This document shows positions 48,756-63,089 of a stretch of 64,000 nucleotides of DNA, in pieces; position 1 is the first letter of the stretch; every line of letters starts with the position of its first letter. Under the pieces are notes generated by a model. That model saw nothing but the letters and a program-made list of their open reading frames with translations, did no database searches and was not told where the DNA came from. The stretch is taken from assembly GCA_002269645.1 (NCBI GenBank), contig NIVC01002257.1:62001-126000 (forward strand). The letters run 5' to 3'. Made by a program: the position numbers and the translations under genes. Origin of the DNA: Macrostomum lignano. Its lineage: Eukaryota.

Positions 48756-49334
48756 ATGTCGGCAATCACGAGAGAGGAGCAGCAGGCCAGACGACGCGAT
48801 GACGCCTGGCAGAGCGCTCAGCATCGCTACCAAATCGTGTCTAAGGCAGCTCGAGACGCGAACAAGCAGACGAAGGATCTGCTGATCATTTTGCAAGAGA
48901 CTGAGTCCCACAGAGCTCAGCTGAGCACGGAGCAATTAAATTTGGTTCGAAGTTTGCTCACGGCTTCGAATAGTTTGAGCAGCTCCTCCAGAGCGTGCTT
49001 CAATTTGGCGGAAGATTTCGCAACGCCACTGGCTGCCGATGTGAGCGACGGAGAGTATTTTGATAGGAACTTTCTGTTGCAGAAACAGTGCCGAGAGAAA
49101 GCGCAAGCTTTTCTAAACGATCACCGGGAGCTGATTAGCGCTAAAGAGGCATTTCTAAGGTGTCTGAATAACGGTAGGCTGCTGCTCTCGCAAAACCCGC
49201 GTGACGTTTACCGAACTATTGGTGGCGTTGCACTTTTAGCTGGAGGTTGCATCGGTTTTGCTGACCGCATCATCAATGGCATTATCGCATTCACTGGCGG
49301 TTGCCTCGTGCTGAAAGATCGCTATTCTAATTAA
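48756..49334 (+). CDS. 192-aa helical protein with a C-terminal Gly-rich hydrophobic hairpin (IGGVALLAGGCIGF..IINGIIAFTGGCLVL)
   Basis: Single long non-repetitive ORF with amphipathic composition; acceptor-like ttcgcag at about 48690. Confidence 0.65.
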   Translation: MSAITREEQQARRRDDAWQSAQHRYQIVSKAARDANKQTKDLLIILQETESHRAQLSTEQLNLVRSLLTASNSLSSSSRACFNLAEDFATPLAADVSDGEYFDRNFLLQKQCREKAQAFLNDHRELISAKEAFLRCLNNGRLLLSQNPRDVYRTIGGVALLAGGCIGFADRIINGIIAFTGGCLVLKDRYSN

Positions 49335-49870
49335 ACATTTTAATATACTAATTCAACGATTTTGACAGCCAAATTTCATTTTAAAATTGTAATAAATGCA
49401 CCAGTTTCTGTAACTGCAAGACCAGGTAAGTTATGAATATATTTTTTAGCTGTTTGCATAGCATCCTGGGGAGCTTCCTATGAAAATTGTGTCCGATTTG
49501 AACAAAAACTGCGTAAGTTAACTAAATTTAAAAAGTCAAAAATTTTTAAATATAAATCAAATGAAAATGACAATATAATTTTACGATAGGCTATTTTTCT
49601 AAAAATTGTTTTTTTATTTTCATCATTTTATTAACAGCCAAATTAGCACCAAAATATAAACATGCGTATTTCTTCCCCGATACTACTGATTTTACCGACT
49701 CAGTAGTATGAACTGATTGTATGTAATATATGATCACATTATACACAACATAGTGGCATGACTATTTATAGTTCTTGTCATTTCTGCAACAAAGTTCAGT
49801 AGCTTCGGAATTGTGTAAAAAAGCTGCACACACTAGATAGACAGTTCGAATCTCAGCTTGAACATAATCG

Positions 49871-50738
49871 TGTTGTGCCCGTGCGCTTGCCCTGCCAAAG
49901 TGCACTCTGCCCCCCACGCGGCATACTGTATTTTTGTGCTATGTTGTTGTGCCCGTGCGCTGGCACTGCTAAAGTGCACTCTGCTCCGTATTTGTTTTTG
50001 GTGTGATAGGCTCAGCGGTGTAAGGCGCTTAGCCCTTTGGGTTGTCTGCGCGCTGGTTGGCTGGGCCGCCCTGTTTGGCCCTCCTCCCCCAGCTGCCCTC
50101 CCCCAGCTGCGCCGTGATTGGCCGGTGGGTGGCTGGGCCGGGGGTGGGGCGGGGGGGAGCCCCCGGCCCCGGGGGGGGGGTCGTGGCCTTTTAAGGCGCG
50201 GCCGGGGCGGGTGGCTGCCGGCCCGTGGTTGTTTTGGTTTGTCGCACTCTACAACGCAGGCCCAGAGCGCCGATTACAGCGTCTTTAGAACGTCCTTCCC
50301 GTAACACATACGCAATAAACGTTGACCATCGGGTCCGCCAGCCGCGAGCAGACCTCAGCTACGATTTATTGACCGCACGCGCAAGGGCGAGCTATCCGCG
50401 AAGTGAGTCACTGCCTTGTCTCTTTGATTTCGGGAGCTGTAGAAGGGACAGTCCGTGTGTCCTGACGCCGACTCAGGGGGGACTAGGCCAGGTAGTCAGC
50501 TAGGGGCCACCCTGTACTGTAAGCCCGCTGTACATAGACGCCAGCTTGTGCGCCCTGACGCCCTGCTGAAGGTGATCGACATCACAGCGTCCCTACGCGT
50601 GTGCCGGCCACTTGGGTGCGTCCTGACGCCCCAGACCTAGGGTCCCGTGCGGAAACTCGCGCCCCGACGCAGGCCGGCACGGGCCCGCGTACTCTGACCC
50701 TCGTAGGTGCACCCTTCCTGAGAGTCGCGAGTACAACA
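49871..50738 (+). mobile_element. Solo LTR (868 bp), Gypsy-type 4-bp TSD
   Basis: Termini TGTTGT...ACAACA; ATCG on both flanks (49867-49870, 50739-50742); internal GATTGG, GC box, TTTTAA and AATAAA in U3-R order. Confidence 0.85.
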
Positions 50739-50934
50739 ATCGAATTGTGTCGAAGCTTGCGGTAAAATAGTTGAAATACGAGCCGTATAGACAAAAAGTG
50801 GTAAACGTGGTAAAATTGAAAACATTCAATAATACAATACAATTGATACAACTTACAATTGCGAAGAACAGTTCGCATTAAGAAAATCATCAGTAAGTTT
50901 AATTGCTGTCAAAATCCCATCACGATTGGAATAT

Positions 50935-60115: not shown

Positions 60116-61019
60116 ATTACATCCATGTAAACAGACCAAGCGCCCATCACTAGCAAGCTAAAAGAAACAAGCTAAAAAGTGGCAGTTGTGATCAACATAT
60201 GGGTAAAAAGCATGCGTGTCGAATATGGAAAAGTCCGCCTTAAAAATTATTCCATAAAATACGAGTGTTGCGTCTTATATATAGATTACTTCAGTATTTC
60301 TGAAGTAAAAATCAGTCAAATGCACTTTTGGAACCTACCTTAGTAATGTGGTTTGGTCAGTGGCAGATCAGTTTTTACACAAACTTCTAGTTCGTAGTTG
60401 AAAAATTGATTAATTTACTCATTGCAATTTGAAAAATATACTGGAACTTCGAAAAACAAGCTATTTAAGTACTAGCTTGTACTCCCTAAAACGCTGCCAA
60501 AATGTGCGTGTAAACTGTGCGCAGAAAAATGTGCATTAGCTTATGTACTCGTAGGTGGAAGTTTCACTGACTAGAACTTGAGCACAAAGGGGATGGAGAA
60601 TAGGCGTACGGTCCGTACCTGCGCGCTCGAACTGTCTCGAATCTAAGAGCCGTTTAATTGGTCCTAGAGAGTAGAAAAGTGCAACCAAAAGGGAACACTG
60701 ACAACAAATAATATTTCTCGCAGGCATTGTGTCTAATCTGTGCGGAAATGTCAAAAAAGGAAACAAACATGGGAAATTAGCTGCATAAACTGATGTGTAT
60801 TCACTATGTCTTGCCTTACTCTGTACTTATGGAAAGGATAATTATTTTAAGGTACAAGCTAATCACCATTGTGAGTTTCTGTATTACCACTTATTTCCGT
60901 ATCATTCGTACATCATCTCACACCATTCTCGCCTCTTCCTGCAACTGCAACATATATTTCCGTATGATTCTCGTGCCATTCCTGCACCACTCACTATACA
61001 TAATCGTTTGCTCATTACT

Positions 61020-61305
61020 TTGCATCATATCCCAAGACCCAAGCCCGCAGCTCCTAAGAGTCCTGTTATAGTTTAGCCGAGAGCTCGAGCATTTCTAGCA
61101 CTCAAACTCGCTTCCTCTATCGCTACTCTGAATCGCTAAGATCTGTGCTTAATCTTTTGTATTCCTCATATATTTTCACTGCTTTTTCGAGCATCTCTCG
61201 TAGCTGTCGAATGAGAATTTTAGAATTGATTTGACTGCATTTACCTCAAATTCCTTGAATATTTATCTTTGCTTTTTCCAAGGCCATTCTCTTGATTCTC
61301 CTGCT
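61020..61305 (-). pseudogene. Deleted relic of APOL/ClyA-like gene 1
   Basis: 61052-61245 aligns to 51471-51707 with deletions; 61273-61300 aligns to the upstream flank 52416-52445. Confidence 0.8.
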
Positions 61306-62057
61306 CCTCAAGAGCCAAATGGGGAGGGTGGAATGCAGTATCAGTGCGATGGCATGACGAACCAATCGATAAAATCAGCAATCTTAATTAGAAGAAAACT
61401 TTAATGAAAATCTCAATTTAAAGATGAGCAGATGAGCAATATGCAATGCGTTTTGGTAAACTAGTGAGAATTTTTTGAGAAATTATATATAAACTATAAA
61501 ACTATATAAACAGATAAAAAAGTAAAAAAGAGCATTAAGTATTATACGAGTAGAATCTAGGAGTAAGCGCATTCTAACAAATTATTTTACCAATATTGTA
61601 ACAATAAACTGATCTTTTGTACATCAGATAAAGTCGATTTGCAGCAGAAAAACTGAAAGCAGTAATTAATTTGAGAGAAAAGTGCATCCTTTTGAGTTGA
61701 AAACTCTGAGAAATTCACAACAAGTCCTTTTTTATGCACATCGCGCACATCTACATTGTACGAGTAAAAATGGGTGAACCTTTGTTTATGAGACGCGGAA
61801 AAATAAACAAACCTTCACCTTAGCGTTCAACACTTGATAAACATTTATAAAAGCCAGCTGTGGGACTTAAGCTACATGAAAGGAAATAATACATAGAAGC
61901 ATAAAAAAGGATATTGACGAATCAGCTGTAGCTAAAGAAGTTTTTGAATCTCTACACTACACAAGCACAATATTTCCATAGCAGTCATAAACTTGTCAGT
62001 CATTGATTCTTGACTGTTAAACAACGCTAATTATCGTTGCATGAGGATCCATCACCA

Positions 62058-63089
62058 TTACATTACGATACATCTCCACCTGGCCGACAGCTGAGCTTGG
62101 AGCTCTTGATGGCTTCGGAGCAGTTCATTCTGACGAGCTTCTGATTCTCGGAACTTTTCCTCTAGGTTGCGCATGTTTGACGACTGAACCTTGAAAGCTT
62201 GGTACTGAGCTTCTAATCTTTCCTCCTTCTCCAGAACCCGGTGCCGTTCCTGGTACATGTCTATCATATCAGAAATGGCGTTAATCATGTCGTCGGAAAA
62301 CTGGATTTTCTCCGTTGATGACTCATATACCCTATCGAGCTGACGCAGGTTAGCCGACAAACTATCGATGATTTTAAGCAGTCCGTCGGCCTTCCTGTCC
62401 AACTCCTGAACGTCGAGGGTAGTTTTGATCCCCTTGGTAACAGATCCGATTCCAAGTCCTGTGCCAGCTGCTACTCCAGAAGCCAAGGCAGCTGCAGGAG
62501 CCCATGTAGCACCCAAAGTGAAAAACCCAGCGATTCCAAGAGCCACGGACACACTGGCAGCAACTGCCATTCCGGCTGTTGCGCCATATCCTTTATTTTT
62601 TCGGCTGGAAACCTCTAATTGGGCTTTCTTGTGCTCATCTTCCAGGTTACTTCGCAAATTTTCGGCGCTCTTGATAACTTCTTCAAGACAGGTGCGAAAA
62701 CTTTGATATTCCTTTCCAAATTCGTTTGCTGAATCCAGTACTTCATGCAGCTTGTCAAGACAGTCCTTAACTTTCTTTGATGTCTTTTCATGGGTCGCCA
62801 CAATTTCCCGTAGAGTTTTATTCATGCTTTTTCCACTACTTTCGAGATTTGAAGCAGCATCTTTGATGGCATCACATTGTGTACCCAAAGAAAGCAAACG
62901 GTGCCGAAAATCTTCCAGTAACTCTACGCTTCGGACATCAATTTCGTCAGCGTTTTTAGCAACAGATCGTATGGTTTCAATATCAACTAAGAAAGTTCTG
63001 TTGATACTAATAATGTCATTGCTCAGTTTCAATGCTTCTAGCGTTTTTTTCGCATCAAAAATCAAATCGGACGCTTGAGGCGTGGCCAT
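62058..63089 (-). CDS. 343-aa APOL/ClyA-like helical protein 3 with a central hydrophobic hairpin and C-terminal CaaX box (CIVM)
   Basis: Intronless CDS; hairpin GATAGMAVAASVSVALGIAGFFTLGATWAPAAALASGVAAGTGLGIG; acceptor tttcag 4 nt before the ATG. Confidence 0.87.
   Translation of the reverse strand: MATPQASDLIFDAKKTLEALKLSNDIISINRTFLVDIETIRSVAKNADEIDVRSVELLEDFRHRLLSLGTQCDAIKDAASNLESSGKSMNKTLREIVATHEKTSKKVKDCLDKLHEVLDSANEFGKEYQSFRTCLEEVIKSAENLRSNLEDEHKKAQLEVSSRKNKGYGATAGMAVAASVSVALGIAGFFTLGATWAPAAALASGVAAGTGLGIGSVTKGIKTTLDVQELDRKADGLLKIIDSLSANLRQLDRVYESSTEKIQFSDDMINAISDMIDMYQERHRVLEKEERLEAQYQAFKVQSSNMRNLEEKFRESEARQNELLRSHQELQAQLSARWRCIVM

Follow-up and report, generated by a model that had tools for sequence, protein, structure and literature searches.

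The window analysed here, a 64,000 nucleotide (nt) stretch of the genome of the flatworm Macrostomum lignano (GenBank assembly GCA_002269645.1, contig NIVC01002257.1; positions 62,001 to 126,000), was found to carry a cluster of three genes, here called A, B and C (Table 1), that encode helical proteins with a predicted membrane hairpin. An initial annotation of the window had reported three co-oriented, intronless genes for proteins of ~345 amino acids (aa), and this description holds, as the predicted products are 343–351 aa long and all are encoded on the minus strand. An in-frame stop codon is located 36–54 nt upstream of each ATG, thus splicing would be needed to extend any of the open reading frames (ORFs). 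Stretches of 2.5–6.5 kb of repeat-bearing DNA lie between the genes, and the GC content and the GC content at third codon positions (GC3) of their coding sequences, 0.44–0.48, are like those of the surrounding genome. In BLASTP comparisons, B and C were 25% identical (E 4e-12), and weaker matches were obtained between A and C (E 8e-8) and between A and B (E 2e-5). With mutual identities of 21–25%, the three genes are, as judged from sequence, true but distant paralogues, and the high divergence noted initially was borne out even for the best pair, B and C.

A look-up of the exact products of A, B and C found no gene on record for any of them. In a collection of 15 billion proteins, the top match to A was only 33% identical and a word-indexed homology search with C returned no match, while B was checked for annotation by the exact-product look-up alone. 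As A and C are absent from a collection that holds the annotated proteins of this assembly, and as no exact product of any of the three is recorded, the genes appear to be unannotated.

Table 1. Features located in the window (positions are those of the 64,000 nt stretch)
Feature	Position	Strand	Description
Gene A	50935–51987	minus	350 aa; complete intronless ATG-to-stop ORF, stop codon included
Hairpin of A	51349–51501	minus	residues 163–213 (51 aa); AVGYTATGLLVVAGLILTVATGGVLGGVGAAALGTAAAGTGAYTSSHAGSL
Cys cluster CCFFCC of A	50953–50970	minus	near the C-terminus (A ends CCFFCCPSRRS); candidate palmitoylation site
Gene B	58519–59574	minus	351 aa; complete intronless ATG-to-stop ORF
Hairpin of B	58972–59088	minus	residues 163–201 (39 aa); YSTGAVTTGAGTIILGITGFFLGGPVGAAAAAALTFTGG
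Gene C	62058–63089	minus	343 aa; complete intronless ATG-to-stop ORF
Hairpin of C	62436–62591	minus	residues 167–218 (52 aa); GYGATAGMAVAASVSVALGIAGFFTLGATWAPAAALASGVAAGTGLGIGSVT
CaaX box CIVM of C	62061–62072	minus	C-terminal end, directly before the stop codon; candidate farnesylation signal
Decayed partial copy of A	~61040–61298	minus	between B and C; codons ~108–175 and a piece of the upstream region of A
Inverted-repeat pair	52953–52995 / 55271–55313		43 nt, 88% complementary; brackets 2.3 kb between A and B
Palindrome	56674–56792		58-nt arms
QRICH1-domain ORF	57051–57593	minus	28.4 bits, just below the cut-off of 30.8
DDE/mariner-like transposase remnant	63387–63920	minus	just past C; sub-threshold DDE_3 and Transposase_1 matches
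hAT transposase, intact	34015–36141	plus	708 aa; zf-BED and hAT dimerisation domain; identical product on NIVC01002257.1
SH2-domain segment	18649–19203	plus	host-gene exon; 25 bits; SH2 alone detected, insufficient for a STAT call
RhoGAP domain	45197–45952	plus	host-gene exon; E 1e-21; annotated on record as a 511-aa RhoGAP protein

The relic copy mentioned in the initial annotation was also found. Its translation contains a frameshift, stop codons and internal deletions, and it is related most obviously to A, sharing with it the DNA repeats D2, D4 and D5 at 83–90% identity and matching residues 108–169 of A at 55–71% identity in a tblastn search, with an E value of 3e-5 against the hidden Markov model (HMM) of the family described below. 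The presence of intact ORFs of ~345 codons beside a decayed copy suggests that A, B and C have been maintained by selection.

The three proteins share one architecture, as had been proposed, and this was supported both by their uncharged stretches and by all-helical structure models. Each protein is 29–34% charged overall and has a single long uncharged stretch consisting to 67% of Gly, Ala, Ser and Thr. The position assigned initially to a Gly/Ala-rich hairpin, residues ~165–215, was close to that found here (residues ~163–218), but at 39–52 aa the hairpin is longer than the ~35–40 aa first given. AlphaFold2 predicted an all-helical fold for B from its single sequence (predicted local distance difference test, pLDDT, 74) and for A with a 19-sequence family alignment (pLDDT 76.9; predicted template modelling score, pTM, 0.62). 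In the model of A, helices span residues 2–46, 52–92, 102–168, 198–271, 282–297 and 302–336 with a low-confidence hairpin at 168–199, so that the order of elements is H1, H2, H3, hairpin, H4 and H5/6 and the hairpin is predicted to lie between the long helices 3 and 4. The hairpins show only marginal hydrophobicity (1.8–2.15 in the best Kyte-Doolittle window of 19 residues), are rich in small-xxx-small motifs and have a composition close to that of the Hbl-L1 head. A C-terminal coiled coil, also part of the initial description, is plausible, as the strongest heptad pattern was found in the helix directly after the hairpin, though this was a rough test and the extreme C-termini are highly charged helices. 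No hydrophobic signal-like segment was seen at the N-termini of A, B and C, in agreement with the earlier statement that signal peptides are absent.

When A was searched exhaustively with HMMER against 1.84 billion representative proteins, mostly prokaryotic or metagenomic, 17 distant relatives were identified at E<1e-3. Three of these are M. lignano proteins recorded as hypothetical (PAA87463.1, PAA82236.1 and PAA78324.1) and the remainder come from ENA or Logan assemblies. All relatives that could be traced to contigs longer than 15 kb were found in eukaryote-like DNA of low gene density. No bacterial relative was present among the representatives, and no related locus was found when protein A was compared with metagenome contigs and GTDB genomes. 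A word-indexed homology search with the family profile matched only one sequence, relative P0012. The family HMM recovered B (E 8e-58) and C (E 3e-70) by construction, as both are members of its alignment. All 17 relatives have an uncharged stretch of 30–70 aa that is rich in Gly, Ala, Ser and Thr, family proteins are 19–34% charged, and helix 3 and the hairpin are the best-conserved regions. No consistent Pfam family was assigned to the 19 aligned members, and no description of such a family in flatworms was found in the literature; by sequence, this is an unnamed eukaryotic family lacking a Pfam model.

Tandem copies recur at four other loci. In M. lignano contig NIVC01000230.1 (locus L006), an intact 325-aa paralogue (coordinates 3697–4674, plus strand) lies 5 kb upstream of PAA87463.1, to which it is 54–55% identical, and as it is missing from the gene calls at that locus, it is apparently also unannotated. 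Locus L002 carries two family copies, L011 one copy and a fragment, and L008 two copies and a relative that lacks the hairpin. This last relative is a 309-aa ORF (L008 coordinates 2443–3387, minus strand) located between the two family members, with N-terminal helices that by eye resemble those of its neighbour and a Ser/Thr/Pro-rich stretch in place of the hairpin, and it is possibly a derivative without a hairpin.

B and C are more closely related to each other than to any other member. A is nearer to relatives P0001 and P0002 (31–33% identity), which derive from another sequencing run and from a UniParc entry, than it is to B or C. This suggests that A, B and C are probably old lineages, and the rapid evolution proposed for them initially did not find support. 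The P0002 entry (UniParc UPI0007A1A69D) is a gene model of 1171 aa that looks chimeric by eye, with low-complexity sequence and an N-terminal part resembling an aminolevulinate-synthase-type enzyme fused around the family member; its CAIL tetrapeptide sits where the real protein probably ends.

Candidate lipidation motifs were found at the C-termini of A and C (Table 1) and in several relatives. P0001 ends in CVCSVL (CaaX-type CSVL) and P0002 carries CVCAIL (CaaX-type CAIL) where the family domain ends, while P0014 starts with MGNCICCGCG and P0012 with MCSCMC. CaaX boxes, Cys clusters and MGxC-type motifs are signals for prenylation, palmitoylation and N-myristoylation of cytosolic proteins, and it is because Cys-cluster motifs serve as palmitoylation sites that this role is proposed for CCFFCC in A. 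As the motifs occur at either terminus in different members, it is likely that both termini are cytosolic, which fits an even number of membrane passes, as in a two-pass hairpin, or a peripheral state. The motifs thus lend new support, at the level of sequence, to a cytosolic location with both termini facing the cytosol, as the initial annotation had suggested.

When the models of A and B were compared with the PDB using Foldseek, no match was obtained at E<1e-3, but the tops of both lists were dominated by toxins of the ClyA superfamily, namely SmhB, AhlB, AhlC, ClyA, PaxB, MakA, NheA and Hbl-B. The soluble form of ClyA aligned with the model of A with a template modelling (TM) score of 0.41–0.44 relative to the query and 0.50 relative to the target (probability 1.0, E 0.04–0.1). 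A Foldseek comparison with viral models retrieved only long helices of the tape-measure and tail-fibre type and was uninformative. The order of elements, with three long helices before the hydrophobic head and a long helix and C-terminal helices after it, agrees with the ClyA plan, and AhlB, AhlC, SmhB, MakA, NheA and Hbl-B were within the top 40 matches, but the match of the models as a whole is borderline.

The best reading of these data, put forward tentatively, is that A, B and C are cytosolic, lipid-anchored proteins that insert their hairpin into membranes and permeabilise them. It is favoured by the architecture common to A, B, C and all 17 relatives, by the ClyA-family toxins at the top of the fold comparison, and by the lipidation motifs. 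The location of the hairpin between helices 3 and 4, like that of the head in ClyA-family toxins, its conservation together with helix 3, its marginal hydrophobicity, the intact ORFs beside a decayed copy, the tandem copies at other loci and the ClyA-like immune genes of Drosophila ananassae described below also speak for it. After synthesis in the cytosol, each protein would form an elongated bundle composed of three long helices, the head and at least two more helices, and the bundle would shield the uncharged Gly/Ala/Thr-rich segment of 39–52 residues, which is long enough to cross the bilayer twice as a helical hairpin. Lipid anchors (the CaaX box in C, the Cys cluster in A and N-terminal myristoylation or palmitoylation in some relatives) would attach the protein to a membrane from the cytosolic side, and a trigger would then lead to insertion of the hairpin with both termini remaining in the cytosol. 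Packing through the small-xxx-small (glycine-zipper) motifs, together with the flanking long helices, could drive oligomerisation and produce a membrane lesion or pore, such that the protein would act as a cell-autonomous, membrane-permeabilising effector working like the B components of the ClyA family or like APOL3. The gene family with its architecture, motifs and tandem arrangement is evident from the data, but we only infer that A, B and C switch from a soluble to a membrane form, oligomerise and form pores. Their biological role is likewise inferred, and that it lies in immunity or cell death is a guess.

A more specific form of this reading is that these are animal-encoded, cytosol-facing, prenylated or palmitoylated alpha-pore-formers of ClyA type, attached at the inner side of host membranes or of pathogen vacuoles until insertion of the glycine-zipper hairpin is triggered. 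They would then make up a new cell-autonomous membrane-attack or cell-death class in flatworms and other eukaryotes, and could represent either an ancient connection of bacterial ClyA toxins with vertebrate APOLs or a separate invention of this design. Taken as a whole, this is unlikely.

Several results weigh against membrane permeabilisation by a ClyA- or APOL-type protein. The hairpin itself was modelled at pLDDT<50 in the AlphaFold2 models. The Foldseek matches all had E values of at least 0.02 and TM scores of 0.4–0.5, and designed helical bundles, F-BAR domains and axonemal coiled coils scored similarly, so the structural check proposed initially did place ClyA-family toxins near the top of the list, but weakly. 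The same layout also fits the non-lytic syntaxin-17, stalks of the mitofusin/LeoBC type and APOL3 as a fusion factor. At the level of sequence, the Pfam models for ApoL, HBL and HlyE did not match A, B or C at E<=1, hhalign gave only 1.4% probability for a match between the family and Escherichia coli ClyA (the ClyA sequence used being confirmed as identical to PDB 2wcd), and individual searches of PDB sequences with A, B and C had no match.

Other profile comparisons did return matches, and these were judged against reversed sequences, which retain the composition and the symmetric helix-hairpin-helix layout of the originals but cannot be homologous to anything. Reversed A, B and C scored 20–24 bits against their own family HMM, and reversed members matched MakB, NheB and SseD with E values of 0.002–0.005. 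Reversed P0009 scored 17.5 bits against ApoL, reversed P0016 reached 26.0 bits against Mis12 and so passed the Pfam gathering score of 25.7, and reversed C scored 36.2 bits against LeoBC (E~1e-9 in a small library). E values for helix-hairpin-helix proteins are therefore badly over-optimistic.

Judged in this way, none of the matches to known families stood out. The top relative in a comparison with ApoL (PF05461), P0008, scored 17.2 bits, below the gathering score of 25.9. An hhalign comparison of the family alignment with 12 genuine APOLs gave 67% probability and a score of 42.4, but the score was 41.5 with the APOL alignment reversed and 42.0 with the family alignment reversed, indicating that there is no directional APOL signal, and homology to APOLs was rejected as unsupported. 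The family profile matched Hbl-L1 (PDB 7nmq; E 1.8e-5, 27 bits) over the hairpin and the next helix, and this fragment was directional, with +27 bits forward and -15 reversed, though still within the range of the noise. The NCBIfam XaxA model matched three M. lignano paralogues (E 5e-5 to 2e-4; 20–23 bits against a cut-off of 125) and the MakA model matched A (11.8 bits against a cut-off of 320). The type III secretion system (T3SS) translocon model SctB2 (PF05802) scored 29.9 bits with A, above its cut-off of 26.5, but the context of A is eukaryotic and other members fell below the cut-off (P0014, 13.3 bits). SLATT models gave sub-threshold matches to several members (14.6–17.9 bits against cut-offs of ~26–35; E 0.003–0.03), and no SMODS/SLOG or NLR-type partner domain was found fused to or neighbouring A, B or C. 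Finally, the bacterial dynamin-like protein LeoBC matched six of eight members with up to 34 bits, in the half that comprises its helical stalk and hairpin.

The Hbl-L1, XaxA, SctB2, SLATT, ApoL and LeoBC scores all lie within the range of the reversed controls, which extends to 36 bits, and these matches, like that to MakA, were ascribed to architecture or composition. As the controls reach such scores, homology of the family to any known family is unproven. The sequence methods thus point to shared architecture and composition, and homology to any pore-former remains unproven by them. Of the APOL/ClyA likeness claimed initially, the shared topology and the ClyA-family toxins at the top of the Foldseek lists stand, whereas the profile comparison to ApoL and HBL proposed as a check yielded no Pfam match and an APOL alignment score equalled by its reversed control.

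The nearest known systems show the same balance of likeness and difference. The ClyA-superfamily toxins, especially components with long hydrophobic heads (Hbl-L1, NheB, AhlB and SmhB; also ClyA, XaxA and MakA), are likewise proteins of ~300–365 aa. Like the flatworm proteins as modelled, they form an elongated bundle of very long helices in which the third and fourth are separated by a hydrophobic hairpin rich in Gly and Ala, and the Hbl-L1 head resembles the family hairpins in length, composition and its central turn (TGG or Pro). They differ from the flatworm proteins, which have no significant sequence or profile match to them, carry an extra charged helical tail of ~80 aa at the C-terminus, and have CaaX or Cys lipidation motifs but no secretion signal. 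Being apparently cytosolic, the flatworm proteins would act from the cytosolic side, unlike the secreted toxins.

In APOLs, a helical bundle at the N-terminus is followed by a flexible transmembrane hairpin that is rich in Gly, Ser, Thr and Pro and lies between helices, and the C-terminal region is helical or a leucine zipper (PMC11726835). The flatworm proteins have the same bundle, hairpin and helical or zipper layout, which as architecture alone is no proof of membership. APOL3, APOL2 and APOL6 are likewise mostly cytosolic animal proteins of ~330–400 aa from fast-diverging tandem gene clusters, but A, B and C did not match the ApoL model and the hhalign score was equalled by the reversed alignment. 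APOLs are not known to carry CaaX boxes.

Animal ClyA-like immune genes have been described as the hemolysin E-like (HL) family of Drosophila ananassae (PMC11731912). These too are animal-encoded, tandemly expanded and very divergent, encoding helical proteins of 33–48 kDa. However, the hemolysin E conserved domain is recognised in HL proteins, many of them carry signal peptides and are secreted, and introns are present in the HL genes (PMC11731912), whereas the flatworm genes are intronless and their products have no signal peptides and no match to the HlyE model. SctB/SseD (PF05802), SLATT proteins, LeoBC and mitofusin stalks, and syntaxin-17 share a local layout of helix, two-transmembrane hairpin and helix with the family, but the T3SS genes, SMODS/SLOG, GTPase and SNARE motif that accompany them are absent from the flatworm proteins, and the SctB, SLATT and LeoBC matches were limited to single members or equalled by reversed sequences.

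The layout shared with syntaxin-17, and with APOL3 in its proposed fusogenic role (reviewed in PMC11726835), raises the main alternative to membrane permeabilisation, itself somewhat doubtful, in which the proteins are constitutive membrane-remodelling or tethering factors with a permanent, flexible two-pass hairpin anchor and coiled coils like those of SNAREs or mitofusin heptad repeats that serve membrane fusion, fission, tethering or scaffolding, forming no pore. The hairpins have Kyte-Doolittle values above 1.6, which would permit a normal transmembrane segment, lipid anchors are commonly found on resident peripheral or membrane proteins, and the strongest heptads directly follow the hairpin. 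Weak matches of the family profile to the Habc regions of syntaxin-1A (E 0.002–0.02) and the match to the LeoBC stalk and hairpin point the same way, but reversed sequences match LeoBC equally, suggesting shared architecture and not homology. No SNARE, dynamin or mitofusin domain was detected in family members with Pfam, and the top structural neighbours were pore-formers, not SNAREs. Housekeeping trafficking factors are usually conserved and single-copy, whereas members of this family are patchily distributed, diverge strongly and occur as tandem duplicates with dead copies among them.

The other explanations concern the origin and the working unit of the genes. The initial annotation had raised the possibility of a multi-component pore, in which A, B and C would be the three parts of one tripartite toxin like Hbl, Nhe or Ahl. 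Three co-oriented paralogues within 12 kb, and tripartite ClyA-family components among the fold matches, would be in keeping with this. However, the A, B and C components of tripartite toxins (Ahl, Smh and Hbl) differ in their heads, with no, a long and a short hydrophobic segment, respectively, and the flatworm proteins are not differentiated in this way, all having similarly long, uncharged hairpins. A fourth copy once existed, only one or two copies are present at other loci, and A is nearer to proteins from other sources than to B or C. The repeat-bearing gaps between the genes and the eukaryotic host also indicate that A, B and C form no operon. A tripartite toxin was rejected on the uniform hairpins and varying copy number, and is highly improbable.

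Descent from a bacterial toxin gene of the ClyA, Hbl or Xax type by horizontal transfer, which had likewise been considered initially, is very unlikely. The three genes are intronless, the weak matches to XaxA, MakA and Hbl-L1 (the last directional) would fit such a source, and horizontal transfer has been proposed for the Drosophila hemolysin E-like genes (PMC11731912). But only 17 matches were found among the 1.84 billion representatives, with those that could be traced on eukaryote-like contigs and none in GTDB genomes, the toxin match scores fall within the noise of reversed sequences, GC and GC3 give no sign of foreign DNA, and eukaryotic lipidation motifs are present where secretion signals are not. 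It is also scarcely credible that A, B and C are non-functional, whether as chance ORFs, young pseudogenes or transposon cargo, even though A and C are missing from the protein collection, the exact products of all three are unrecorded and transposon remnants surround the genes. Three stop-free ORFs of ~345 codons are very unlikely to arise by chance in DNA of ~45% GC, the dead neighbouring copy has already acquired stops, and annotated paralogues (PAA87463.1, PAA82236.1 and PAA78324.1) occur elsewhere in the genome. The retention of a shared architecture at 21–25% identity requires long-term purifying selection.

The remainder of the window was also examined. The initial annotation had placed the start of the cluster at 48756, but this position belongs to a plus-strand ORF (48756–49334) and the cluster proper spans 50935–63089. 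The possibility that this ORF is a fourth or truncated member was rejected, as BLAST and HMM comparisons gave no match to the family and no Pfam model was matched. Its predicted product of 192 aa appears helical in the N-terminal part and has a short hydrophobic tail rich in Gly (TIGGVALLAGGCIGF...FTGGCLVL) that superficially recalls the start of the family hairpin. Transposons between the genes, as reported, are represented by transposon-type remnants, among them the QRICH1-domain ORF and the inverted-repeat pair. The 43-nt inverted repeats and the palindrome with 58-nt arms possibly derive from the terminal inverted repeats of DNA transposons or of miniature inverted-repeat transposable elements. 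A tRNA-like sequence recognised by eye at ~59804–59914, 230–340 nt upstream of B, is possibly a fragment of a short interspersed nuclear element; ARAGORN called no tRNAs across the whole window and an Rfam scan of the window gave no match.

Many long micro- and minisatellite arrays (8459–10105, 15107–16314, 21105–21944, 25431–27433, 29400–32320, 38724–39263 and 41240–41936) occur in the first 42 kb, with strong strand skew (GC skew up to 0.93), and yield long, spurious, repetitive ORFs. A further array of at least 14 units of 22 nt occupies 47436–47865. Transposase genes and host-gene exons in the window are listed in Table 1. A 22-kb portion of the contig record around the intact hAT transposase was 100% identical to window positions 24015–46141, record positions being equal to window positions plus 62000, and proteins of this assembly with BOX15_Mlig locus tags are those of M. 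lignano. The SH2 exon lies ~32 kb from the cluster and is uninformative as to its regulation.

The cluster, with the architecture, motifs and tandem organisation of its genes, reveals an apparently unannotated gene family lacking a Pfam model in a model flatworm, recurring as tandem arrays in other eukaryotes. It also demonstrates that HMM and profile matches scoring as high as ~36 bits, when made between helical proteins with hairpins, are not to be trusted unless reversed-sequence controls are run. The design is of a known kind, that of alpha-helical hairpin proteins that insert into membranes, and is distinctive in its lipid-anchor motifs and cytosolic orientation. The function and the ancestry of the family are unproven, and it is a good candidate for experiments. 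M. lignano is a genetically tractable model, and the innate immunity of flatworms is poorly known. If these proteins do permeabilise membranes, they would represent a cell-autonomous pore-forming effector of flatworms on the ClyA/APOL plan, delivered from the cytosol by lipid anchors, and would bear on how hosts remain unharmed by such proteins and on whether a helical bundle with a greasy hairpin was inherited or repeatedly invented in bacteria and animals.

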